This document shows, in pieces, positions 1-48,209 of a stretch of DNA of 64,000 nucleotides. The notes below the pieces were generated by a model that was not told the origin of the DNA, ran no database searches, and saw nothing but the letters and a program-made list of their open reading frames with translations. The stretch covers positions 22,878,001 through 22,942,000 of the forward strand of contig NC_079172.1 in NCBI RefSeq assembly GCF_947568905.1, read 5' to 3'. The DNA is from Ostrea edulis. Its lineage: Eukaryota. Position 1 is the stretch's first letter; the number at the start of each line of letters is the position of its first letter. The translations under genes and the position numbers were made by a program.

Positions 1-560
1 CAATTCACTCACTCACACACACACTTACCAATCCGCACACACACCTACCAATTCACTCACTCACACACACACTTACCAATCCACACACACACACTTACCA
101 ATTCACTCACTCACACACACTTACCAATTCACTCACTCACTCATACACTTACCAATCTGCACACACACTTACCGATTCACTCACTCACACACACACTTAC
201 CAATTCACTCACACACACACACACTTACCAATCTGCACACACACTTACCGATTCACTCACTCACACACACACTTACCAATTCACTCACTCACACACACAC
301 ACTTACCAATCTGCACACACACTTACCGATTCACTCACTCACACACACACTTACCAATTCACTCACTCACACACACACACTTACCAATCTGCACACACAC
401 CTACCAATTCACTCACTCACACACACACTTACCAATTCACTCACTCACACACACACACTTACCAATCTGAACACACACCTACCAATTCACTCACTCACAC
501 GCACACTTACCAATCCACACACACACTTACCAATCCACTCACACACACATTTCTGTACCA
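1..560. repeat. CA-rich compound minisatellite (approx. 26-30 bp units, cacacacacttaccaattcactcact), intronic
   Basis: Direct reading: recurring ttacc(a/g)at core separated by (CA)n and (CTCA)n runs. Confidence 0.9.
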
Positions 561-697
561 ATCTACCATACTCAAACACACACATACTACACATACTATA
601 TACATACTCACTCTCACACCCAAACTGGCACCATTATGTTACAATAACAGCCTCATTTTCTCTATCACATGGGGTGATTATATTTAAGATCACTCAC

Positions 698-780
698 AGC
701 CCTGGGAAGTTCGTCTGAATTACAGCCATTGACCATAGCTGGAGCTATCAAGTTGGCTGATAAAATTCCTAGTGGATTCG
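698..780 (-). CDS. SLC49A3: MFS transporter SLC49A3/MFSD7-like, coding exon 4 (gene continues off the left edge)
   Basis: AG/GT-bounded 83-bp exon, phase 1 to 0, reads (A)NPLGILSANLIAPAMVN, matching SLC49A3 NPLGVLVANVLSP. Confidence 0.85.
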
Positions 781-1715
781 CTATTGAAAAAAAGAAAAAA
801 AAAATACAGTTCAGATAATCTCAGAGTCTACATTCGCATGACTTTCTGCAGAAAAGTTATGCTAAGCGATATAAAATAGCTGTAAAAGAAAACTAGAACT
901 GTCCTAACCCCTGCAGGACATTTGATGGTGGTGGGAAATAGTGAATTTGTGCTCAGTGAAAAATGGTAATATATTTTGAACAATGACAATATAACATCCA
1001 CCCATGCCTTGAAATGAAAAAAAAAATCCATAACTTCTGTGAATGCTAAAAAAAATTCAATCAAAATAGCAGGAGCATAACTTCATTATTCATATAACAT
1101 ATGTACATAAAGTTTAATCTGTTATCTGTGTTAAATACTCTGGACAAATCATGACTACAAACTGAAACATATGGACGGACAGACGGACAAGGTGATTCCC
1201 TCCTAAAACATGCAATATGGGACAATACGAAGAATCTAGATATATTTTTTTAAACAAAACAAGATATGAATATAATCTGCAGATTATAAAGTCTCCCAAA
1301 CAAAGTAATGGCTGTATACATTGTATTAGTGGGCTTTTTCTGAGTACTACTGCCCCCCCCCCCCCCCCCGAAATTAATAACTTAATATCTATTTTCATTG
1401 TTATAATTAATTGCTTGTAAACTTGTACATGCCCCCCCCCCCCCCCCCCTAGGGCCCTTGATTGGTGAATAAACAATAAACATATATATATACACACATA
1501 TAGGCCAAAGTGTTTGCTTGAAAAAAAATCCAATAAACAGATAGCATTTTTAATCAAAATGTTTTATTACCGGTATTTACATTATTCACCAAGATTGCAG
1601 ACTTTTTGATGATCCCTCTTACATTATATTTCTATTAAAGAAAAGAAAATGTTAAGCTTACTGATCAGAGAAATTTATTTTCAATCTCACATGGAATATC
1701 TATATAATATATTAC

Positions 1716-1932
1716 CCATGGATGCCATCATATTTGCTGTAGCTCTCTGTGAGTCAGGGAACCACAAAGCCGCTAACTTTGTTGGAGCAAACATCACAAA
1801 AGGCTGAGAAATGGCTGCCAATGTCTGTCCCGCCAGCAAGATCCAAAACCTCAGGTCATTGGGAATATCTCCAAATGTACTCACATTCCTCAGGAGGTTT
1901 CCGATGCCATTCAGCCACGCTGACAACAGTAT
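1716..1932 (-). CDS. SLC49A3: SLC49A3-like coding exon 3
   Basis: 217-bp exon ILLSAWLNG...GQTLAAISQPFVMFAPTKLAALWFPDSQRATANMMASM; canonical splice sites, phases fit both neighbours. Confidence 0.9.
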
Positions 1933-2253
1933 CTGTTCATAAATAAATCAGTGTAGTACTTTTAGTAGAATTTTTAAAAAGAGTTGTTAAAAGTATCTGT
2001 AGGTAAAACATAGAACTGTTAAAATCAAAACATGGCTACTAGGGGCCTAGGAAAAGAGACCTGGTTGGCCATCTTTGCAAATAGCTAGACAGCATCACAT
2101 ACTGGAAAGTGATTACGGTACAGATGTGAGTTTTTGTTTATTACATTACTTCCAGCTAAGACTTCCTGTCACATTGGATTTATCTAAACAGTTGGACCTA
2201 TCAAAGAATCTTTACAGTGATAATACACAACCATCTATGTCTGTTGTACTCAC

Positions 2254-7949: not shown

Positions 7950-8395
7950 CGTGGTTAGTAGGTAAAACCCCCAAGGTCAAGAGATTAAAAACTTTGGTAC
8001 CCAAAGAAGTCTTGCCATAAGGAATACACGTAAAATATGAAAACCTTAGACTAACCATTCAAAGTTAAAGTTTTCCAGAATTAGGTAACCATCAGGTAAA
8101 GTTAATGAGGGAAGAAAAAAAACATGGTTAGTAGGTAAAACCCCAAGGTCAAGAGATCAAAAACTTTGGTAGCCAATCTGATTAAAATCAGCTCCTCGAT
8201 CCGCTCCTTTATTTCTTTTGATTTGCCGCTACTCGAAGAAATAAAGGAGCGGATCGAGGAGCTGATTTTAATCAGATTATTTGGTAGCCAAAGAAGTCTT
8301 GCCATAAGGAATACACGTAAAATATGAAAACCTTAGCATTAACCATTCAAATTATAAGTTTTCCAAAATTAGGTAACCACAAGGTAAAGGTAATG
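7950..8395. repeat. Tandemly duplicated approx. 165-bp interspersed-repeat fragment (second copy interrupted by a fold-back)
   Basis: tggttagtaggtaaaaccccaaggtcaagag...aaagaagtcttgccataaggaatacacgtaaaatatgaaaacc occurs twice. Confidence 0.75.
8175..8279. mobile_element. 105-bp fold-back mini-element with 10-bp target duplication (MULE-like MITE, inferred)
   Basis: Perfect 43-bp arms 8175-8217 and 8236-8278, 18-nt loop; tttggtagcc at 8165-8174 and 8280-8289; the upstream duplicate unit shows the empty site. Confidence 0.75.
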
Positions 8396-8436: not shown

Positions 8437-8988
8437 CGAGTTATCATATATTTACACATATGAAATACGGTTTCCCTTATTGTGGCAAAACCCGACACCC
8501 CGGGGGCCATGATTTGAACAAACTTGAATTTGAACTATGTCAGGAAACTTCGATGTAAATTTGAACTCTTCTGGCTCAATGGTTCTTGAGAAGATTTTTC
8601 CTATATAAATACATATAAAATGTGGTTTCCCCTAGTGTGGCCCCACCCGACCCCCAGGGGCAATGATATGAACAAACTGGAATCTGCATTATGTCAGGAA
8701 GCTTCCATGTAAAGTTGAACTCTTCTGGCTCAATGGTTCTTGAGAAAAATTTTCCTATATACACACATATAAAATATGGTTTCCCCATGTGTGGCCCCAC
8801 CCGACCCCCAGGGGCCATGATATGAACTGGAATCTGCATTATGTAAGGAAGCTTCCATGTAAAGTTGAACTCTTCTGGCTTAATGGTTCTTGAGAAGATT
8901 TTAAAAGATTTTTCCTATATATAAATACATATAAAATATGGTTTCCCCTATTGTGGCGCCATCCGACCCCTGGGGGACATGATATGAA
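8406..8988 (-). mobile_element. Non-autonomous Helentron-type element with oyster approx. 166-bp (Cg170/HindIII-like) satellite array, 3' part (left of the Polinton)
   Basis: End aacaagaggcccatgggccacatcgctcacc, then about 3.5 tandem approx. 160-bp units (tggttcttgagaagattttt...gatatgaacaaactggaatc) resembling the known oyster satellite family (recognised from memory). Confidence 0.75.
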
Positions 8989-9333
8989 AGTAGTATAACG
9001 CGTCCCGATAGGGAGTTCAACTGAGTGCACTTTTTATGCAAATGAGGTCAAGTAAGGGCGTTTTTGATTGGTCAAGCGGTGTTGGGGTCAACGGAGTGCA
9101 CTAGGACGGGGTCAACCCCAGCAGGGGTTGTAGAGCGGGTGAATAGACTGGGCTATGGCCGCTGGTCTATGATGCGGTACTTTCGCTTTGAGTTCCTGGA
9201 ATGAGTTCCTGCTATTTTTCTGAAAATCCAGTGAAATCCTGTGTATTAAATCTAAAAGAATAACAGTGTATTAAATCTAAAAGAATAACACAAGGTTTTA
9301 AGTTGACATGTTTATTAAAGAACAATAGTACAA
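8989..9333 (+). repeat. Left terminal inverted repeat (345 bp)
   Basis: 8989-9146 is the exact reverse complement of 29226-29383; the inner part matches with patches of divergence; contains a 2 x 25-bp tandem at 9241-9290. Confidence 0.95.
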
Positions 9334-23089: not shown

Positions 23090-23116
23090 GGTCACTTGTT
23101 ACCATTTTTCTCAATC

Positions 23117-23518
23117 ATGTCGTTTGAACGGTACGCGGATGATGAAAATGATGTACTAGTGTGTGGGTATTGCCGAGGACCTTGGAGCACTTGTGGGTGT
23201 TTTCATTATAAAAAAGAAAACATCCTGGCCAAACAGAAGTGGATAGAGAGATTGGCAGAGCTGACGTTTTATCCCTTTGTCTATAAATGTTGTGGTCACA
23301 CTAGAGAACCCTGGCTAGAGTGTAAGTGTCCGCAGCATTGTACCATCACCCCTGAAGAAGAAATAGCGCATAAGGACTGTACCTGTGAGATCTGTCAGGA
23401 GTTTAGAGAGCGCTGGACTCAGAGAAAGTTTGATCCCCGGGTGTTTCAACATTGTCCTTACAGTCAAGAACCCCGGTCAACGTGTACCTGTGAGACCTGT
23501 CAACCAGCATGTCGGTGA
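23117..23518 (+). CDS. Cys-rich putative zinc-binding protein (133 aa)
   Basis: Three copies of C-x-[YH]-x-[RQ]-[GE]-P-[WR]-x-x-C-x-C plus two CTCExC motifs. Confidence 0.7.
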   Translation: MSFERYADDENDVLVCGYCRGPWSTCGCFHYKKENILAKQKWIERLAELTFYPFVYKCCGHTREPWLECKCPQHCTITPEEEIAHKDCTCEICQEFRERWTQRKFDPRVFQHCPYSQEPRSTCTCETCQPACR

Positions 23519-24006
23519 CGGATCTACGAGGAGATGTATTATCTCTACCTTGGGTGGATGCTATTGTACAACAATGTAACTGTTTAACGGTGAAACCTCA
23601 TGGATTAAGTCAACGTATTGCCGAACGATTTCCTTGGGCTAATCTGTATGCGACCCGACAACCTTTAGGACGGAGAAATTTAGCTATAGCAGCGGATCGA
23701 GGAATACCGGGTACTGTGTGTATTATGCCTCATTCTACTCATCCTGATGTGATCTGTTTGTTAGCGCAATGGGATTACGGGAGAGGCACTCAACGCTTAC
23801 CCCTGTATGCCGATACCCCCGAACAACGTGAACTTTGGTTTCAACAATGTTTACAGGAATTAGGCACTTTGTCTTACCAGACTTTAGCGTTTCCTTATCG
23901 TATTGGATGTGGATTAGCCGGAGGCAATTGGACTCATTATAGACAATGGATTTGTGACTTTGCTTATCAGTATCATAAACATGTGTACATTGTCAAGAAA
24001 ATGTAA
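23509..24006 (+). CDS. Macrodomain (ADP-ribose binding/hydrolase; Poa1p/TARG1/DarG-like class)
   Basis: GDVL...AIVQQCNC...GLSQRIAERFP...PGTV...LLAQWDYG...LAFPYRIGCGLAGGNW. Confidence 0.9.
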   Translation: MSVTDLRGDVLSLPWVDAIVQQCNCLTVKPHGLSQRIAERFPWANLYATRQPLGRRNLAIAADRGIPGTVCIMPHSTHPDVICLLAQWDYGRGTQRLPLYADTPEQRELWFQQCLQELGTLSYQTLAFPYRIGCGLAGGNWTHYRQWICDFAYQYHKHVYIVKKM

Positions 24007-24156: not shown

Positions 24157-24948
24157 TCATTCCCTGCTTCCGGTAAACCGGCATAACGGGCACCGTCCCC
24201 GGGTGTGTCGCCGCTCCTGTAACTCTTCCACGCACGAGCAGCAAGCTGGGCGCTGCCCACATCCCCTGCACGTAATTCCAGAGTGTACCCTGTCTTGCCA
24301 GCAGACAGGACACTTAAACCAGATGGGAACCGCCCTATCTGCCCAGCCAGGGACAGTCATAGGGTGGTTCCTCGGGGGATGAGTTGCCACCGGTGCGTGG
24401 GTTGGTCTCGGTGGTGGTGGAGTCCTCCCTGCAAACCGGATGGTAGGTGGTGGGGGTCTTGCAGGGGCTGCTGGTCTCGGTGGTGATGCTGTGTCTGCCA
24501 CCAACAGCGACGGACTCTGGGCTGGACTGGGAGGTGGTGCGGGGGACGGTGACCGCGGTGAATACTCCACCGGTGACGCTGGTGAGTCGCTCATCGGCAC
24601 CGGGCTGTATTCCACTGGTGCCGATGGGATCGCTGGTGGTGGTGTTGTAGGCGTCGCCGGTGAGTAAGGTGGTGGTGGTGAGGGTGGCTGTGGGGCCCGT
24701 CGGCGCGGTCTCGTACCCGTGGAGATTCGAGCGGTGCGGCGGCGGGGTGCCCTCCCTTCATACTCGGCCCGCACCCGGCAGATGATCTCACGGACCCCAC
24801 TCTGGTCGAAAGGGGAGAAGGTGCTCAGGTCGTTCTCAGAACGCACGACCCAATTCTCCCCTACCCGTTCCTCAGCCACCACTACCAGCCGGTACCGGAA
24901 TCCAGGCAAGGTCTGAAAATTGTAGAGCGGGTCTCTTCTTGTAGCCAT
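24157..24948 (-). CDS. Pro/Ser-rich protein with C-terminal RING-like finger (263 aa)
   Basis: CPVC-x10-CRGCGQRPACCSC-x13-CPLC; PPPPY; YSPATPT, YSPVPMS, YSPRSPS; first ATG 24948. Confidence 0.8.
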   Translation of the reverse strand: MATRRDPLYNFQTLPGFRYRLVVVAEERVGENWVVRSENDLSTFSPFDQSGVREIICRVRAEYEGRAPRRRTARISTGTRPRRRAPQPPSPPPPYSPATPTTPPPAIPSAPVEYSPVPMSDSPASPVEYSPRSPSPAPPPSPAQSPSLLVADTASPPRPAAPARPPPPTIRFAGRTPPPPRPTHAPVATHPPRNHPMTVPGWADRAVPIWFKCPVCWQDRVHSGITCRGCGQRPACCSCVEELQERRHTRGRCPLCRFTGSRE

Positions 24949-25022
24949 TCTTCTTTCTTCTTTAAAATCCTTCAAAAATCTTCTATAACTGTGCTGGGTC
25001 ACCAGTGAAGCGAACTGGCGAG

Positions 25023-25069: not shown

Positions 25070-25503
25070 TCGCTTCGGAGACGAAGCCAAGATGGTGGCC
25101 GTCAAAATGGCGGATTTGTGCTTTCGAGTAGAGAGATTTTTCTCATTGTCTTTTTCTAGACATTCGATATCTGTGCAAGGTAGATTTAATCTGATAGATT
25201 CTGAGACGGCGAATGCGTTAAACTTATTTTTATTTTGCTACGTCGCATAGTTTTCAAAGAAACAGAGGTTAAAGAGGTCGAGTCGAGGTTCAATGTTTCT
25301 TCACCCCTCTTTAAAAATTTATTTCTCGACCATGTACATCCCTAACAACATCTCATAAGGTCTATTCGATAGAAAACACCTTATTTGATTCGATTTTCAC
25401 TCTACCTTTAGGATTTTCTGGATTCCTCAACAAATAAACCCTTCTCTGAGAGACTCAACCAAACACAGCTTTCGTGTAAACAATTTTATTCATGTCACAT
25501 ATT

Positions 25504-25722
25504 TCAAATACATAACTCCCACACACAACACCAATTCACATGTCTTTTTAAAATAGGGTCCAACATTTTTTCCATTTCTCGAATCCTGCGTTGAAATCGA
25601 TATCGATCAGCGGCTACAGTCATCCAGATACTTGTCCGGTCTTCTTCGGGTAACAGATGCACTTCATTTTGATCCAGATTAAAAGTCACACGTTTAACTT
25701 GACGTACATCTCTCGAAGACAT
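25504..25722 (-). CDS. PPP1R15/GADD34-like (ICP34.5/DP71L-type) PP1-recruiting protein, 72 aa
   Basis: KRVTF (RVxF) then EVHLL...W...AADRYRFQRRIREMEKMLDPIL, matching the GADD34/DP71L W...ARDRxRFxRRI...L signature; ATG 25722. Confidence 0.88.
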   Translation of the reverse strand: MSSRDVRQVKRVTFNLDQNEVHLLPEEDRTSIWMTVAADRYRFQRRIREMEKMLDPILKRHVNWCCVWELCI

Positions 25723-25991
25723 CGTAGTCTGATTTTCTCGATTTCTGCTCTGTCTGTGAGTCGAATTCGTTTCAATTCCTGGCCCATTAAATGAATCAGT
25801 ACTAAGGCTTGCGGGGTGATCCGGTTCTCGATCAAATACTGACAGAGACATGGATAGTCCTTTAAGCTGATGGGAAATAATTCTTCTCGCATATAGTGTA
25901 ACACAAATTCAAACTGCCCAGAATGAATGTCTGTGAGATAATCCAATACATAAACTATCGCTTTCTCTGTGATGTGGTCACTGCTGGCCAT
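25686..25991 (-). CDS. Helical paralogue 4 of tandem array (101 aa)
   Basis: MASSD start and FPISLKDY...LVLIHLMGQELK...IEKI...CLREMY, shared with its neighbours. Confidence 0.8.
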   Translation of the reverse strand: MASSDHITEKAIVYVLDYLTDIHSGQFEFVLHYMREELFPISLKDYPCLCQYLIENRITPQALVLIHLMGQELKRIRLTDRAEIEKIRLRCLREMYVKLNV

Positions 25992-26325
25992 CCTCCGGGA
26001 ATAAATGAAATGAATTAAGTTCTTCACACTTTATGTATACTTCTCGAAGCCAGTCCTTGGTGATACTTTCAATCTCGGCGGTTTTTTCAGGCATGCGTTT
26101 CTTGAATTCCTCCCCCGCGACATAAATTAACATCAACCCCGCATCGTTATAGAGATTGATGTACACATGGTTCCGTAGATCTGTATATTCGTCCAGAGTC
26201 ATTGGAAACACCCCCGCTATCAGATAATTTTTAACAGCTTGAAACACCGTATCGTCTTGCATTTTCTCCACCCATTCTAATGCATGGTTATGCGCTTTTT
26301 CTGCGATGTTGTCACTGCTGGCCAT
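25978..26325 (-). CDS. Helical paralogue 3 of tandem array (115 aa)
   Basis: MASSD...FPMTLDEY...GLMLIYVAGEEFKKRMPE...IESI...WLREVY. Confidence 0.8.
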   Translation of the reverse strand: MASSDNIAEKAHNHALEWVEKMQDDTVFQAVKNYLIAGVFPMTLDEYTDLRNHVYINLYNDAGLMLIYVAGEEFKKRMPEKTAEIESITKDWLREVYIKCEELNSFHLFPEDGQQ

Positions 26326-26353
26326 CCTCCAGGAATAAAGGAAAAGAAAACGG

Positions 26354-26707
26354 TTAGGTTTTTTTATACACCTTTTCCAGCCAGTGATCGGTAATCGCTA
26401 CAATCGCCCCAGTCTTCTCAGGTTCCCGTCGTCTAAATTCTTGGTCCATGTTATAAATCATGATCAATCCAGACTCTCTGTTCAGGTTGTCGGCTATATG
26501 CTTGCAAACGCTGGAATATTCATATAAGGTCATAGGAAATTCCCAAAAGATCAACAACTTCATGGCGAATTTATATCTCAACGGCTGTTTTTCTTTCCAG
26601 TCCTTGATACACTGTAATGCAGCGCTACGAGCGTTGTTCACCGATTCTTTGTAGTCCTCGAAATGCTGTAATACAGCGGTAAGAACGTTGTTGGTCAATT
26701 CAGCCAT
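26354..26707 (-). CDS. Helical paralogue 2 of tandem array (117 aa)
   Basis: FPMTLYEY...IADNL...GLIMIY...EFRRREPE...WLEKVY; first ATG 26707. Confidence 0.8.
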   Translation of the reverse strand: MAELTNNVLTAVLQHFEDYKESVNNARSAALQCIKDWKEKQPLRYKFAMKLLIFWEFPMTLYEYSSVCKHIADNLNRESGLIMIYNMDQEFRRREPEKTGAIVAITDHWLEKVYKKT

Positions 26708-26744
26708 GATGATCAAAATGAAAAAATTCTAAAACGTTCTTGTT

Positions 26745-27077
26745 TTATAACAGGGCAGCCATTCCTTTCATACGAATCAGTTCCACGAATCCTTTTTGTA
26801 GACAATCGCGTAAGATCCGATCAATGTCACTCATCTGGTCTGGAAGATTCTGTTTCAATTCCTCAGCATACAAATAAATCATGAGTAAACGTCCCGTATT
26901 GGTATTCTCCGCTAATGAATCAGCAATCCGTTGAAAACTATGTACATTTCTGACCTCCGGTGACATCTGTTGTACAAATTGACGAGCATTTTGAATGTGA
27001 GGATTATGTAAGGCCACGTTCATACATTGTAGTACATAACTATATCCATTTATTCTCGTAGTAGCACTGCCCCCCAT
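26745..27077 (-). CDS. Helical paralogue 1 of tandem array (110 aa), possible Bcl-2-fold protein
   Basis: SFQRIADSLAENTNTGRLLMIYLYAEEL resembles BH1 (FxxVxxELFxDGxNWGRIVxxxxF); TATAAATA on the minus strand at 27107-27114. Confidence 0.65.
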   Translation of the reverse strand: MGGSATTRINGYSYVLQCMNVALHNPHIQNARQFVQQMSPEVRNVHSFQRIADSLAENTNTGRLLMIYLYAEELKQNLPDQMSDIDRILRDCLQKGFVELIRMKGMAALL

Positions 27078-27128
27078 AGTAAATAACGAACGTTCAGAAA
27101 ACACCTGTATTTATAGGTAAAGGTTATG

Positions 27129-27181
27129 CATCACGTGATCAAACACCTGCACCACGTGATCAAGCACCTGTACGTCAGCTG
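27129..27181. promoter_or_regulatory. E-box cluster (2 x 21-bp direct repeat) in a divergent promoter
   Basis: catcacgtgatcaaacacctg 27129-27149, caccacgtgatcaagcacctg 27150-27170, then TACGTCAGCTG. Confidence 0.6.
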
Positions 27182-27216: not shown

Positions 27217-27723
27217 ATGGATACACGGAGAATTTTAAGAGCGAGACGCCGCGGCCAGGGAATACAACCAGTGGAGAATTTAACCATAGTAGAAGATTAT
27301 GTAGACGAGATGGAGATCTGGGCCAATTTAGTACAGAGATGTCGCCATCGATTACGCTGGGGCCGATCTAAAAATTGGTGTTTTGACTATGTATTGCGGT
27401 CACATGAAACAGTGGAGGATATTTACCTGCGTTTAAGTGACATGTACCTGAAAAATTCCCCCCTCATACAGTACATGATTTACCAGTTTTACACGTTATT
27501 GAACGGCACTCAAAAAGTATCGGGATTTATTCGACTGGAGAAACCACGTTACCGGAGAAGTGTATGGGTATTGTTTTGGGATGCACACTGGATGTGGGAA
27601 ACCGTCGAAGAGATACGTTTCCCCGGGAGAAGAGCTCGACAATTAGTACAACACATTATATCCGAAGATCATGACTTACACGTGTATATAGAAGAACCTG
27701 CGTATGAAGCCGGCCATTTTTAA
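27217..27723 (+). CDS. Hypothetical 168-aa protein resembling a catalytically dead CRESS-virus HUH Rep endonuclease domain
   Basis: SKNWCFDY (motif I-like), YMIYQ...GTQKVSGFIRL (motif II-like, no His), DAHW; no motif III Tyr. Confidence 0.55.
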   Translation: MDTRRILRARRRGQGIQPVENLTIVEDYVDEMEIWANLVQRCRHRLRWGRSKNWCFDYVLRSHETVEDIYLRLSDMYLKNSPLIQYMIYQFYTLLNGTQKVSGFIRLEKPRYRRSVWVLFWDAHWMWETVEEIRFPGRRARQLVQHIISEDHDLHVYIEEPAYEAGHF

Positions 27724-28043: not shown

Positions 28044-28961
28044 ATGGCTCAGAAACAACTAGAATTTGTGGACAAAGCTCAGAAGAAAATAGATCAGCTG
28101 GTACAGAAGGAGATGGGGCCACAAAAAGACTACATTGAACTGAAGAAAGCTAAGAGTGACGATCAGAAGACTGAACTGGGGAAGACCTCGAACTTCTTGC
28201 TCACGTCTCCAGACTACGTTGCTCAAAGAAGAAGAGAAGAGAAGAAGATGGCCCAGACCTCGAACCAGACCACGAGCTTCAATCTCACGCCTTCAGACCA
28301 CGTTGCTCGACAAGTGAAGATGGCCCAGACCTCGGATTACCTCCCTAGCCAGAATCCGACAGACCCGGGATTAGGCTTCTATTTTCCCGATTCACAGGAC
28401 GCTACGGGACTGGAGATGGGCTTATACGATAAACCCCCCTTCGGCGGAGAAGATTCCCCCATGAGCAGGACCGATTTCGCCATCATTACCACGACACTCG
28501 ACGGGATCGTTAACCGCATTAATGTGCTGAGTAATGAGATTGGAAATCATACCACAATCCTACTGAAGAAGCTGGAAGACCTGACTTCTAAAAAACCTAG
28601 GAAGGAATACACTCCAGATTACACTGCTAACCCGTGCTACACGTGTGGAGAAACAGGACATTGGTCGCCGGATTGCCCACAGAAAACAGATTATCCGCAG
28701 ACCAGTAAGAAATCGTGGTCGGCAGATTCTCAACAGACCAGCAAGAAAACCAAACAAAAGGATCCTTGCTTCAAATGCGGAAAAATAGGACACTGGATTA
28801 GTGAGTGTCCAGAAGAACAAGCGGAGATAGATGCGATGATTGGACCCGTACCTGGCTCAAAACCCCCTGTGAAGAGAGAATACACACCGTTAGAGATGTG
28901 GAATCCACCCGCACCTACTGAAGAACGGCCAAAAAAGAAGAAGAAACTCAGCAGAAAGTAA
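28044..28961 (+). CDS. Coiled-coil plus double CCHC zinc-knuckle protein with C-terminal NLS (305 aa)
   Basis: CYTCGETGHWSPDC and CFKCGKIGHWISEC; RPKKKKKLSRK; TATA 27985, Inr 28013, AATAAA 29052. Confidence 0.85.
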   Translation: MAQKQLEFVDKAQKKIDQLVQKEMGPQKDYIELKKAKSDDQKTELGKTSNFLLTSPDYVAQRRREEKKMAQTSNQTTSFNLTPSDHVARQVKMAQTSDYLPSQNPTDPGLGFYFPDSQDATGLEMGLYDKPPFGGEDSPMSRTDFAIITTTLDGIVNRINVLSNEIGNHTTILLKKLEDLTSKKPRKEYTPDYTANPCYTCGETGHWSPDCPQKTDYPQTSKKSWSADSQQTSKKTKQKDPCFKCGKIGHWISECPEEQAEIDAMIGPVPGSKPPVKREYTPLEMWNPPAPTEERPKKKKKLSRK

Positions 28962-29034: not shown

Positions 29035-29383
29035 TTGTACCATTGTTCTTTAATAAACATGTCAACTTAAAACCTTGTGTTATTCTTTTAGATTTAATAC
29101 ACTGTTATTCTTTTAGATTTAATACACAGGATTTCACTGGATTTTATACCGATTTTCAGAAAAATAGCTTTTCCAGGAACTCAAAGCGAAAGTACCGCAT
29201 GCTAAAATTAGGACCATAGGCCAGCCTATTCACCCGCTCTACAACCCCTGCTGGGGTTGACCCCGTCCTAGTGCACTCCGTTGACCCCAACACCGCTTGA
29301 CCAATCAAAAACGCCCTTACTTGACCTCATTTGCATAAAAAGTGCACTCAGTTGAACTCCCTATCGGGACGCGTTATACTACT
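29035..29383 (-). repeat. Right terminal inverted repeat (349 bp)
   Basis: Reverse complement of 8989-9333. Confidence 0.95.
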
Positions 29384-29810
29384 TATGAACAAACTTGAAT
29401 CTCCATTATGTCAGCAAACTTCCACGTAAATTTCAACTATACTGGTACAGTGGTTCATGAGATTTTATTAAATGACCCCACCCTATTTTTACACTTTTGT
29501 GATTATCTCCCATTTGAAGAGAACCTGGCCCTTAATTTGAACAATTTTGAATTCCCTTCAACTAAGGATGATTTGCATTAAGTTTGAATGAAATTGGCTT
29601 ACTGGTTCTGGAGAAGATTTTTAAAAATTTTCAGTGTATTTTTACCGATTTGCTATTATCTCCCCTTGGATAAGAGGGTTGGCCCTCATTTGAACAATTT
29701 TGAATCCCCTTCACCCAAGGATGATTTGTGCCAACATTGGTTAAAATTGGCCCTATGGTTTTGGAGAAGTTGAAAATGTAAATGTTTAACAGACAGACGA
29801 CGGACAAAAA

Positions 29811-45344: not shown

Positions 45345-46606
45345 GTAAGTCATTACGACAAATTTACTCAGTCATATTTTCAGTACAAAATTATTGATCA
45401 TTGACAAGAATTAAAAAGTTATTTTTATTTGTTGTTGTAATTCATTATCTATTGTGTGAAATTTGAAAATTATTTTCGTAGTTTAGAGGTATTTTGTATA
45501 TGAATTGTTGAAGAGAAGAGTGGGAGTAGATGTTTAAGAATAATGATCATATTCATTCTTGTTATTTGTAGTAAACAAAAAGAAACTGGAAAGGAGGGTA
45601 AGTGGAAAATAACGATAATTCCATGGTGATTATGATAATTTTAAAGATGTAAATTAGTGCTGTCTATGAATAGTTGATATAAATGAATACCTATCATTTT
45701 GTCCAAATGAGCTTGAATGTAAGTTTTTATTGTCAGTCAGACTATGAAAGAGGCCAGTCTTCATTTTACACTAATCTTGGTTGAGATTCAGCTTGGCTGA
45801 ATATTTAGACTGACGCCTTCACTGAATCTCAGAGCAGTTCTTCATAATTCATGTCTGGAAATTTACTTCCAGTTTCGGCTGGTTCTAGCTATTAATGTGC
45901 ACTTAGATTGCACTGCTGTTTGCTTCAGATATTAAGTGGTTTGACTATTAAACTAACTATCACTATTAATCTTGCATTGCTTACCGTGTAAGTATGAAAA
46001 TTCCAAAATGAAAACTGTCCCTAAATTTTCCGTTCAGATGAAGACTTCCACCGCACAATATTTTGTATTCTGAAATTGAAAAGTTCCAATTGTCTGTTTT
46101 ATCAAATTACTGATACATTGTATTGATCTCCACATACCTACTCGTACATTGCTAATTTAAGAACAAACTATGGAAACTCTTCAGTTTCGGGAGATAAAGT
46201 ATTGTGCCATCCAAATATTCAGCCAGGCCGAATCTCAGCTGAGATTACATTTTACACAACTCTGGATTGGAAATACTTTCACTTAATTAAGCTATTTTAA
46301 ATTTGAATGTACCCATTACTTTCCAGTCTTTGCCAGTGGGAAATCCTATAATTGCTGCAGGTAAGACTATTTTAAACTTGAGATAAATTGAAAAATAAAA
46401 ACAGAAGAATTGCTTTTGGCATCATGTAAATTTTAATTGAAAATGGTCAAATTGCATGATAAATGGCACATTTACAGCTACAAGAAAAAAGCTGAGCATA
46501 AGGATTGAATCATCTCTGTTGCAGTTCTCCAAATTCCATTAATTAACACATATTAATGGATTTTATGTGGTGTTTCTTCTTCATTATCTGGGTGTGTTTT
46601 TTCCAG

Positions 46607-48093
46607 CATTACCTACATCACATGCAAGTTCTGGAAAGAAAAGAAAGTCTACAGAAAGTTTAGAATCCAGGTCTAAGAGGGCAAGAGTGTCATTTGGACC
46701 CAAACTCAGCCCTGAACACTTCTTAAAGACCCTGCCTCCATCCACACCCGTCAGGAAGGGAGCAACACCCAAACGAATGGCTTCTAATTCAGATTTGAAA
46801 CCACTGCTGAAAAGGAAATCTGTCGTCACTGTCCCAAAATCTCCAATCAAAGAAGAGAGTCCACAGAAAGCCAGAAGTTCTCAAAAATCTCCAAAGGCTG
46901 GTCGTTCTCCAAGAAGTCCAAATGATAAAAAATCTCCACAACAGAAAACTAAGAGCCCGAGTGCTTCACCCAAGACAGCTCAGAACAAGGTACCAGAGAT
47001 GACTACAACCACTTCTAGAAGTCCGGTTCAAAGTAGATCTCCAGCAAAATCTGCTACACCCACATCATCACTCAGAACTCCAATGAACAAATTGCCTAAA
47101 GCTAAGCCTTCAACACCCAGAAGTGCCTCTCCTAAGACACCAAGTAACAAATCTCAAGTTATAGCAGTATCGCCAGTCGCAACTCCAGCAAAGCCTTCAC
47201 CCAAGTCTCCAACTCGAAGCCAATCTCCTAAAACAAAAGCAACACCTAAATCTACTCCGAAAAAATCGTCACCAACTAAGGCTAAGTCTCCTATATCCAA
47301 AATATCTCCTAATAGTTTAAAGAAGGATAAATCAATGGATGAGTCCTTTGGACTAGATGGTCTGTTTCAGACACCCAATTTGGTTACAAGTACTCCTGCT
47401 GCTGGCAGTAAAAAGAAGAGAAAATCAGCTGTGTTGAATTCAACTCGGTCAAAGAAAAATATAGAGACCAAGCGAAGAACAAGTACAGGGAATCTTGGAG
47501 GTGTTAAGAGGCTGCTAAAGACTCCAAAGAGGTTGCCAGACACCAGCTTCACTGGAATAGCTGCCCTGATGAAGACCCCAACAGCAGTAACAGCAAAAAA
47601 GACCACTCCAAAAATTGTATCGATGAAGACTCCAGCAGACATTAGCTACACTGGAATTGCTACCATGATGAAGACCCCCAAAACAGCTTCAGCAAAGAAA
47701 ACACCCACGATGAAGACCCCCAAAACAGCATCAGCAAAGAAAACACCAAAAGTTAAATCTGCAAAGCCTTCAGCAGACACGAGCTACAGTGGCATTGCAG
47801 ACATGATGGCTACACCTAAACAAAAACCAACACCTACAAGGAAAAACTCCCCTAAAGTTGTTGTTTCCCCAGCTGTACAGAAAATTAATAATCCCATTGC
47901 AGACCTAAGGAAAGCTGTAGCCATTCGTGCTATTCATGGGAAAAATGCAACTCCAAAATTGTTAAAGATGGCTCCTGCATCATGGGCTGATGTAGTAAAA
48001 AAAGGTGTGGCAAAGAAAGTTCTTACCCCACAGGCCAAGAGAGTAATGCATGGGAAGAGAGCTGCACAAAGTGCCAAGAAGAATCGAAGGAAG
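46607..48093 (+). CDS. MKI67: Ki-67 coding exon 5 (PP1-binding domain, Ki-67 motifs, SWADVVK)
   Basis: KRARVSFGPKLSPEHF..TLPPSTPVRKGATP matches KRRRVSFGGHLRPELFDENLPPNTPLKRG; SWADVVK conserved. Confidence 0.92.
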
Positions 48094-48209
48094 GTTTGCA
48101 GAATATTTTCTAAAATTTTATAAATAATATTGAAATTATTTACCTTAAAAATTATGACAATGTTGTAAAATACATTTGTACTATGAATATTCATACCAAT
48201 GTATTTCAG

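Follow-up and report, generated by a model that had tools for sequence, protein, structure and literature searches.

Virus-encoded mimics of Bcl-2 are well established (PMC2494871, PMC4358236, PMC3847314), and Bcl-2-like proteins of poxviruses that lack a transmembrane (TM) segment have been co-opted as inhibitors of NF-kB (PMC2494871, PMC4358236). In the known members of the family, the BH3 groove is composed of helices alpha-2 to alpha-5 (PMC3847314). Homologues of Bcl2 and of IAP have been observed in adintoviruses (Starrett et al. 2021, PMC8502044), and the viral proteins DP71L and ICP34.5 recruit protein phosphatase 1 (PP1), by which eIF2-alpha is dephosphorylated (PMC5346070). Elements of the Maverick/Polinton kind occur widely in the genomes of animals, and most of their accessory genes have yet to be characterised. 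We describe here four tandem genes, designated P1, P2, P3 and P4, that lie in the right-hand accessory arm of a ~20.4-kb Maverick/Polinton-like element of Ostrea edulis, within a stretch of 64,000 nucleotides (assembly GCF_947568905.1, contig NC_079172.1, positions 22,878,001 to 22,942,000 of the forward strand) that is referred to as the window and whose own numbering is used throughout. The explanation that we favour, by a slight preference, is that these are intact accessory genes whose products would adopt a shortened Bcl-2-like bundle and antagonize host responses.

Four paralogous genes and their relatives

P1 (26745-27077, 110 residues), P2 (26354-26707, 117 residues), P3 (25978-26325, 115 residues) and P4 (25686-25991, 101 residues) are consecutive, intact open reading frames (ORFs) on the minus strand, as seen both in the ORF list and in the sequence itself; the bounds given are from the first in-family ATG of each frame. 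P1 and P2 are separated by 37 nt and P2 and P3 by 28 nt, and P3 and P4 overlap by 14 nt, with the final ~15 codons of P3 running through the leader of P4. A sequence-only reading of this DNA had proposed four tandem, diverged paralogues of 101-117 residues, and the four frames were found as it had placed them. Their relatedness is borne out by pairwise BLASTP (E values of 3e-19 for P2/P3, 6e-18 for P3/P4, 2e-8 for P1/P3, 3e-8 for P2/P4, 1e-4 for P1/P4 and 5e-4 for P1/P2) and by alignment with hhalign of the P1-type and P4-type subfamily profiles, each built with its own relatives, which gave a probability of 93.9% and an E value of 1.5e-7 over 89 columns. A hidden Markov model (HMM) of the family, run against the 64-kb window translated in all six frames, recovered exactly P1-P4 and no fifth copy below an E value of 0.2. 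By these sequence comparisons, P1-P4 are true paralogues, at a level far beyond chance, and their setting is a virus-like element.

The family comprises two clades: the P1 type, with relatives of ~100-110 residues that are 40-50% identical, and the FPxTL clade, which includes P2, P3 and P4 and is named here for the motif FP[MI][TS]LxxY that the earlier reading had recognized in three of the paralogues and that is present in all three of these. The most conserved motif of the whole family is [GA]L..[ML]I[YH]...E[LF][KR], which is on the helix placed by Pfam against BH1/alpha-5. A longer pattern had been proposed as common to all four proteins, but P4 fits it only in part, with Ala in place of Gly, His in place of Tyr and no Pro. 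The P1 peptide that had been compared with Bcl-xL is present in the P1 translation. The BH1-like Gly-Arg pair is confined to the P1 type. It is located at the start of the conserved helix (helix 4) in P1 and in most P1-type relatives, and the corresponding residues are Gly-Leu in P2 and P3 and Ala-Leu in P4.

A profile of the four paralogues retrieved eight relatives, none of them named, in a word-indexed protein search, and an exhaustive profile search of 1.84 billion protein representatives gave 29 matches at E values of 0.001 or less, all short apart from P0017, a repetitive protein of 732 residues that looks spurious. When a P4-type relative served as the query, another search retrieved 47, and over 100 sequences of the family are now available in all. 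The contigs from which the relatives derive are all short (5.6 kb or less; ENA, JGI or Logan) and give no useful annotation, and the label "Sec63" carried by one family member is surely a mis-annotation. The closest relatives are 82-94% identical and include orthologues of P1, P2 and P4 (82-90% for those of P2). The family is tiny and appears to be restricted to Maverick-type elements.

Because the ORFs are short and are known from sequence alone, they might be chance or decayed open frames that give no protein product. We attach almost no credence to this possibility, which is effectively refuted by the paralogy and the full-length orthologues: four frames on one strand share homology over their full lengths, orthologues that are only 40-50% identical retain full-length frames, and AlphaFold2 (AF2) gives confident models of the proteins from shallow alignments.

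Predicted fold and its likeness to Bcl-2 proteins

The AF2 models of P1 (from a 12-sequence alignment; pLDDT 81.2, pTM 0.74) and of P3 (from a 22-sequence alignment; pLDDT 84.5, pTM 0.76) each comprise five helices with boundaries that nearly coincide: residues 11-22, 26-41, 45-57, 61-77 and 79-109 in P1 and residues 2-22, 26-39, 44-57, 61-77 and 79-106 in P3. In a Foldseek search of the PDB with the P1 model, most of the top 50 places are occupied by members of the Bcl-2 family, namely ORFV125 of orf virus, Mcl-1, Bcl-xL, BAK, BFL1 and BAX, with probabilities of up to 0.98 and query-normalised TM scores of 0.50-0.62. ORFV125 was matched with an E value of 0.48, a probability of 0.97-0.98 and a TM score of 0.56, and Bcl-xL with a TM score of 0.62. 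The matches of the P3 model are likewise mostly to Mcl-1, Bcl-xL, Bcl-2 and Bcl-w, at E values of 1.6 or higher, probabilities of 0.2-0.38 and TM scores of 0.40-0.55. In the BFVD library of viral models, the first match of P1 is a protein named "Bcl2" from a lancelet adintovirus, followed by several Bcl-2 homologues of herpesviruses and iridoviruses among many unrelated phage proteins.

The same family is indicated by a marginal match at the level of sequence. Residues 23-94 of P1 align with positions 8-87 of the 100 in the Pfam Bcl-2 profile (PF00452) with an E value of 0.0066 and a score of 17.4 bits, relative to a cut-off of 31.4 bits. In set scans (3 of 12 and 3 of 11 proteins), the profile was matched by P1, by P0001, which is 93% identical to P1, and by one further relative; P0005 and P0006, which are 50% identical to P1, matched in the same register when scanned singly (E value 0.11, ~13.4 bits). 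PF00452 is the only Pfam family that recurs among the P1-type members, and the scan gave no match for P2, P3 or P4.

A number of results weigh against the assignment to Bcl-2. No Foldseek match in any library reaches an E value of 0.001, the best values being 0.48 for P1 and 1.6 for P3, and in the P3 list the Bcl-2 proteins are interleaved with prolactin, the CdvB2 filament subunit and designed proteins. P1 misses the gathering score of PF00452 by 14 bits; P0007 and P0009 have no Bcl-2 match, and P0010 and P0060 weakly match another family. Searches of PDB sequences with P1, with the four paralogues, with 22 members and with the P1-type subfamily gave matches at chance level only and none to Bcl-2, and the family profile reaches no canonical or recognisable Bcl-2 protein among its 29 matches in the 1.84 billion representatives. 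The proteins have ~100 residues and five helices as compared with ~130-150 residues in the aligned domains of the matched Bcl-2 structures, and TM scores of 0.4-0.6 between helical bundles of ~100 residues can arise without homology. AF2 and Pfam may read the same local signal and so are not fully independent, and the whole case for P1-P4 is built from sequence and predicted models.

Because the sequence score is below threshold, BH2 is lacking and the fold match is not significant, membership of P1-P4 in the Bcl-2 family is not established. Nevertheless, a marginal sequence match and two structure searches converge on one family out of thousands, which is unlikely to be a coincidence, and we consider a genuine, shortened Bcl-2-like fold to be probable on balance, although each of the lines is individually below its threshold and those from AF2 and Pfam are possibly not independent. 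The fold proposed in the sequence-only reading is thus the only one to recur across Pfam, the PDB and the BFVD, and AF2 with Foldseek, the check suggested there, places mostly Bcl-2 proteins at the top of the PDB lists for P1 and P3, but at significance in none of them. Two of its comparisons fared worse. Adenovirus E1B-19K is rejected as a likeness, being at rank 38 in the BFVD list with an E value of 3.5 and a TM score of 0.30. For the poxvirus immunomodulators, no Pfam match to A46, N1, A52 or B14-type proteins was obtained with P1-P4, and Foldseek gave only a cowpox F1L homologue from the BFVD (E value 2.2).

Most, but not all, members of the Bcl-2 family have a C-terminal transmembrane anchor. 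None is present in P1-P4, in all four of which the maximum Kyte-Doolittle mean over 19 residues is 1.06 or less. BH2 and helices 7-8 are also absent; the fifth predicted helix is the last, and the Pfam match stops at position 87 of the 100 in the profile. The earlier description of the proteins as small and lacking BH2 and a TM segment is therefore confirmed by the models and by hydropathy. If the fold is that of Bcl-2, the five helices would correspond roughly to alpha-1 to alpha-6, and the models may accommodate a BH3 groove, since the known grooves consist of alpha-2 to alpha-5.

In the explanation that we favour, P1-P4 are real, intact accessory genes encoding soluble, five-helix proteins of ~100 residues, for which a shortened Bcl-2-like bundle with the equivalents of helices 1-6 is the best available assignment. 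The proteins would act by protein-protein binding in the host cell, where they would dampen cell-death and stress responses. The P1 type, with its BH1-like Gly-Arg, is a candidate minimal viral Bcl-2, and the FPxTL clade (P2-P4) has lost the Gly-Arg and probably took other partners, as the poxvirus Bcl-2-like proteins did.

The tail beside P4, the repeated leader and transcription signals

A feature missed in the sequence-only reading lies directly downstream of P4. An ORF on the minus strand at 25504-25851, in another frame and overlapping the end of P4, matches over its last ~70 codons the PP1c-binding domain of the GADD34/ICP34.5 type (PF10488), including an RVxF motif. The match has an E value of 1.7e-5 and a score of 25.1 bits, 1 bit short of the cut-off of 26.1, and the RVxF is invariant among relatives in the alignment of the tail. 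P4 and the tail can be considered as a single part (25504-25991, minus strand), of which the two components are read in different, overlapping frames in the window but share a frame in some relatives. Thus P0016, of 148 residues, holds both parts, its N-terminal half matching P4 (E value 3e-11) and its C-terminal half the tail of the window (E value 8e-17); P0070, which is 91% identical to P0016, likewise encodes the helical domain and the tail in one protein, and six more relatives extend from the helical domain into part of the tail. The window differs from the fused relatives by one frame change between P4 and the tail. Most P4-type relatives (~97-101 residues) stop just short of the tail, and stand-alone tail ORFs are represented by P0114 (66 residues) and P0115 (109 residues), both with a precomputed PF10488 assignment. 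Because most relatives also keep the two parts apart, their separation in the window may, as judged from these protein sequences, be normal for the family and not a defect peculiar to this copy. The P4 type is linked to this tail, of the GADD34/ICP34.5/DP71L type, which, we propose, would recruit PP1 to dephosphorylate eIF2-alpha.

The tail suggests an alternative for the family as a whole, in which the five-helix domain is not a Bcl-2 fold but a family-specific helical module that works mainly in targeting or regulation at the N terminus of a PP1 regulatory subunit like PPP1R15 or ICP34.5, and P1-P3 are tail-less decoys or substrate specifiers that act in trans. The in-frame union of the P4 type with the RVxF-containing PF10488 tail in P0016 and P0070, its partial counterpart in six others and the position of the tail immediately after P4 in the window are all consistent with such a subunit, as are the failure of every sequence-profile search to tie the family to Bcl-2 and the non-significant Foldseek E values. 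However, most P4-type relatives end before the tail, no RVxF was seen at the C termini of P1-P3, and in a 22-member alignment of P1-, P2- and P3-type members the sole match to PF10488 was the fused P4-type protein P0016. The structural matches of both models are, moreover, dominated by the Bcl-2 family and not by any PP1 regulator. We regard this alternative as unlikely, although a serious contender; it and the Bcl-2-like fold are not mutually exclusive.

As a separate observation, an ORF of 518 codons on the plus strand outside the element (46567-48123) has a domain annotated "Protein phosphatase 1 binding" (PF15276, E value 1.2e-11); this ORF presumably represents an exon of a host gene and is unrelated to the PP1-binding tail of the element.

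The starts of P3 and P4 share a direct repeat of 56 nt on the minus strand, with copies at 26293-26348 and 25959-26014 that each comprise the leader and the first 11 codons of the respective gene. The copies are 89% identical and spaced by 334 nt. The identity of 32 of 34 nt around the two starts in the sequence-only reading is exact and forms the core of this longer repeat. It had been taken as evidence of serial duplication, but the leader is not a simple mark of a recent event of this kind because the coding bodies that flank it are only ~35% identical as proteins. The P3 protein itself is only ~35-38% identical to its neighbours and has no counterpart in the closest relatives; among all relatives no P3 orthologue above 56% identity was found. 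Its best matches outside the window are a P4 orthologue (40%) and a 76-residue fragment, P0030 (56% over 54 residues). In P0046, a single ORF of 229 residues, a P2-type protein is joined directly to a P4-type protein through 12 linker residues that translate the leader, and therefore in this copy P2 abuts the P4 leader with no P3 between them. P3 of the window has a copy of the 56-nt repeat at each end.

The simplest readings of these arrangements are that the relatives lost P3 when the two leader copies recombined or that the present copy acquired it when it recombined unequally, at the leader, with a diverged element. The 56-nt island itself is either a 5' element under constraint or the trace of a recombination through which the P3 cassette was inserted or deleted. 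On the sequence comparisons, the copy number of the array is changing, and in our explanation it would shift by recombination at the 56-nt leader. The term gene accordion, used in the sequence-only reading, is thus apt in the limited sense that P3 is present here and absent from the closest relatives. The source contigs of a P1-type, a P2-type and a P4-type relative have the same size, 2921 nt, and those of a P1-type and two FPxTL-type members of a more distant lineage share a size of 2764 nt; this coincidence of sizes, taken by itself, hints that close and distant relatives have the array as well. A more far-reaching proposal would bring the tail and the array together: a miniature Bcl-2-fold domain was joined to the RVxF/GADD34-type tail and in this way came to serve for targeting in a virus-encoded regulatory subunit of PP1, and its tail-less paralogues radiated into a small array of host-response antagonists with a copy number that changes by leader recombination. 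We offer this as a doubtful, speculative possibility.

Candidate transcription signals, called as consensus matches only, are arranged regularly along the array. On the minus strand, TATAAA is present at 27110-27115, 26744-26749 and 26363-26368, respectively 38, 42 and 43 nt upstream of the ATG codons of P1, P2 and P3, and a degenerate version is located upstream of P4. The only AATAAA downstream of the coding sequence of the cluster is at 25485-25490 (minus strand), just past the tail ORF, and is a candidate for a shared poly(A) signal. On the plus strand, TATA[AT]A at 18535-18540 and 19705-19710 lies 45 nt upstream of the ATG codons of the ORFs at 18580-19575 and 19750-20442; because this spacing matches that at P1-P3, the sequence suggests a compact promoter layout common to the element. 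The interval that separates P1 from the divergent plus-strand ORF starting at 27217 contains, just upstream of the P1 TATA-like box, a tandem repeat of 21 nt (27127-27168, copies 90% identical) with a CACGTG palindrome in each copy, which may be an upstream promoter element. A scan for promoters and terminators of the bacterial type gave results at or below the expectation from shuffled sequence. The layout suggests individual promoters, very short leaders and one common 3' end, giving 3'-coterminal transcripts, such that P1-P3 would each be expressed from its own TATA-proximal promoter and the cluster would share the one AATAAA.

The host element and comparison with known systems

The element is bounded by terminal inverted repeats (TIRs) of ~350 nt, at 8988-9333 on the left and 29035-29384 on the right, that were identified as inverted-repeat pairs I1 and I2 and are 95-99% identical as complements. 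Its GC content is ~0.45 as compared with 0.32-0.38 in the flanks. A block of genes on the plus strand encodes a protein-primed family-B DNA polymerase (PolB; DNA_pol_B_2, E value 1.9e-55), a protein with BIR and RING domains, a Pox_A32-like ATPase, an integrase with rve and Chromo domains and an adenain-like protease, for which the match to Peptidase_C5 (E value 2.9e-4) is slightly short of the Pfam cut-off. Zero breaks were counted in the core genes at the level of ORFs. Pfam gave no matches for the presumed capsid ORFs or for several flanking ORFs, and no capsid gene was identified in this way. With its PolB, integrase, ATPase, protease and TIRs, the element is a Maverick/Polinton of the adintovirus-like kind, and it is young and integrated in an animal genome. 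The gene for the BIR and RING protein, of the IAP type (13431-13958, plus strand; BIR E value 1.2e-15, zf-C3HC4_3 E value 1.5e-11), directly follows the polymerase gene and is a second putative anti-cell-death gene of the element. Some 700 nt outside the left TIR, at 8175-8278, there is a perfect inverted repeat of 43 nt with an 18-nt spacer, and the first 2000 nt of the window (1-2000) have a strong negative GC skew of -0.39, unlike the remainder.

In the accessory arm, P1-P4 have several neighbours. A proline-rich ORF of 281 codons on the minus strand (24157-25002), in a stretch with a GC content of 0.61, has no Pfam match and a Cys-rich C terminus that appears RING-like by eye. A Cys-rich ORF is located at 23096-23518, and an ORF of 168 codons at 27217-27723 on the plus strand. 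The plus-strand ORF at 23509-24006 (165 codons) has no Pfam match and may, from weak matches to sequences in the PDB, be a macrodomain; the matches are to 2fg1 and 2afc, which are uncharacterised bacterial proteins (E value 0.003), and to 5e3b, a "Macrodomain protein" (E value 0.16). Adjoining the right TIR, an ORF of 305 codons on the plus strand (28044-28961) encodes two CCHC zinc knuckles (E value 3e-15); such a protein is unusual in a Maverick and recalls the Gag or nucleocapsid proteins of retroelements.

Small helical proteins with no recognised domains in a virus-like element might also be structural or genome-associated, with a role as core, scaffolding or DNA-binding proteins and no modulation of the host. 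We consider this highly improbable for P1-P4. Their genes are in an accessory arm on the opposite strand, together with the RING-like ORF and the PP1-binding tail and at a distance from the morphogenetic block; with pI values of 4.7-7.8, the proteins are unlike typical basic core proteins; close relatives differ in the number of copies, as would be unusual for structural genes; and the family is missing from most Mavericks, having 29 representatives in 1.84 billion proteins.

If the Bcl-2-like fold is correct, P1-P4 would be among the smallest Bcl-2-like proteins and a compact case of the shortening, duplication and re-purposing of a scaffold, and the union of the P4 type with the tail, if true, would be an undescribed way to build a viral phosphatase adaptor. 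Together, the two would represent an architecture new both among viral mimics of Bcl-2 and among viral adaptors of the eIF2-alpha phosphatase, in endogenous elements of the Maverick type. The element would then have a set of anti-death and anti-stress genes of the kind found in large DNA viruses, here in ~20 kb. Should the fold call fail, P1-P4 would still constitute a new, narrowly distributed family of accessory genes with a documented change in copy number.

As compared with the Bcl-2 family, including ORFV125, Mcl-1, Bcl-xL and BAK, P1-P4 have in common a helical bundle, for which these proteins are the best structural matches of both models, and, in the P1 type, Gly-Arg where the conserved hydrophobic helix begins and the sub-threshold match of P1 to PF00452. 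Members of the family are also found in DNA viruses, and the genes described here belong to a DNA virus-like element that has another anti-death gene, the IAP. The differences are that P1-P4 have ~100 residues and five helices rather than seven or eight, that they lack BH2, a recognisable BH3 or BH4 and the C-terminal anchor, that P2-P4 are without Gly-Arg and that all scores are below significance. With the multiple TM-less paralogues that a poxvirus encodes (A52, B14, A49 and N1 in vaccinia), they share their number per genome and the loss of BH motifs, but the poxvirus proteins have ~150 residues or more, and the likeness is by analogy only.

A comparable setting is that of the adintovirus or Maverick "Bcl2" and IAP genes (PMC8502044), which resemble those described here in the kind of element and the accessory theme, in providing the best BFVD match and in the presence of a BIR and RING gene; the lancelet adintovirus "Bcl2" differs in its length of 197 residues, and the match to it is weak (E value 0.78, TM score 0.44). 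In the literature searched, we found neither a description of four Bcl-2-like genes of ~100 residues arrayed in tandem in Mavericks nor any paper that links Mavericks to GADD34-type proteins or to a PP1-binding tail. The tail resembles PPP1R15 (GADD34/CReP), ICP34.5 and DP71L (PF10488; PMC5346070) in its RVxF, its profile match and its DP71L-like length of ~70 residues; it differs in scoring 1 bit below the cut-off and in being fused to a five-helix domain in some relatives, an architecture that is not described for these proteins in the literature searched. Viral Bcl-2 mimics and the Bcl2 and IAP genes of adintoviruses are thus known, and what is new is the polymorphism of P3, bracketed by the repeated leader, and the link of the P4 type to a PP1-binding tail, which is fused to it in some relatives and lies just downstream in another frame here.

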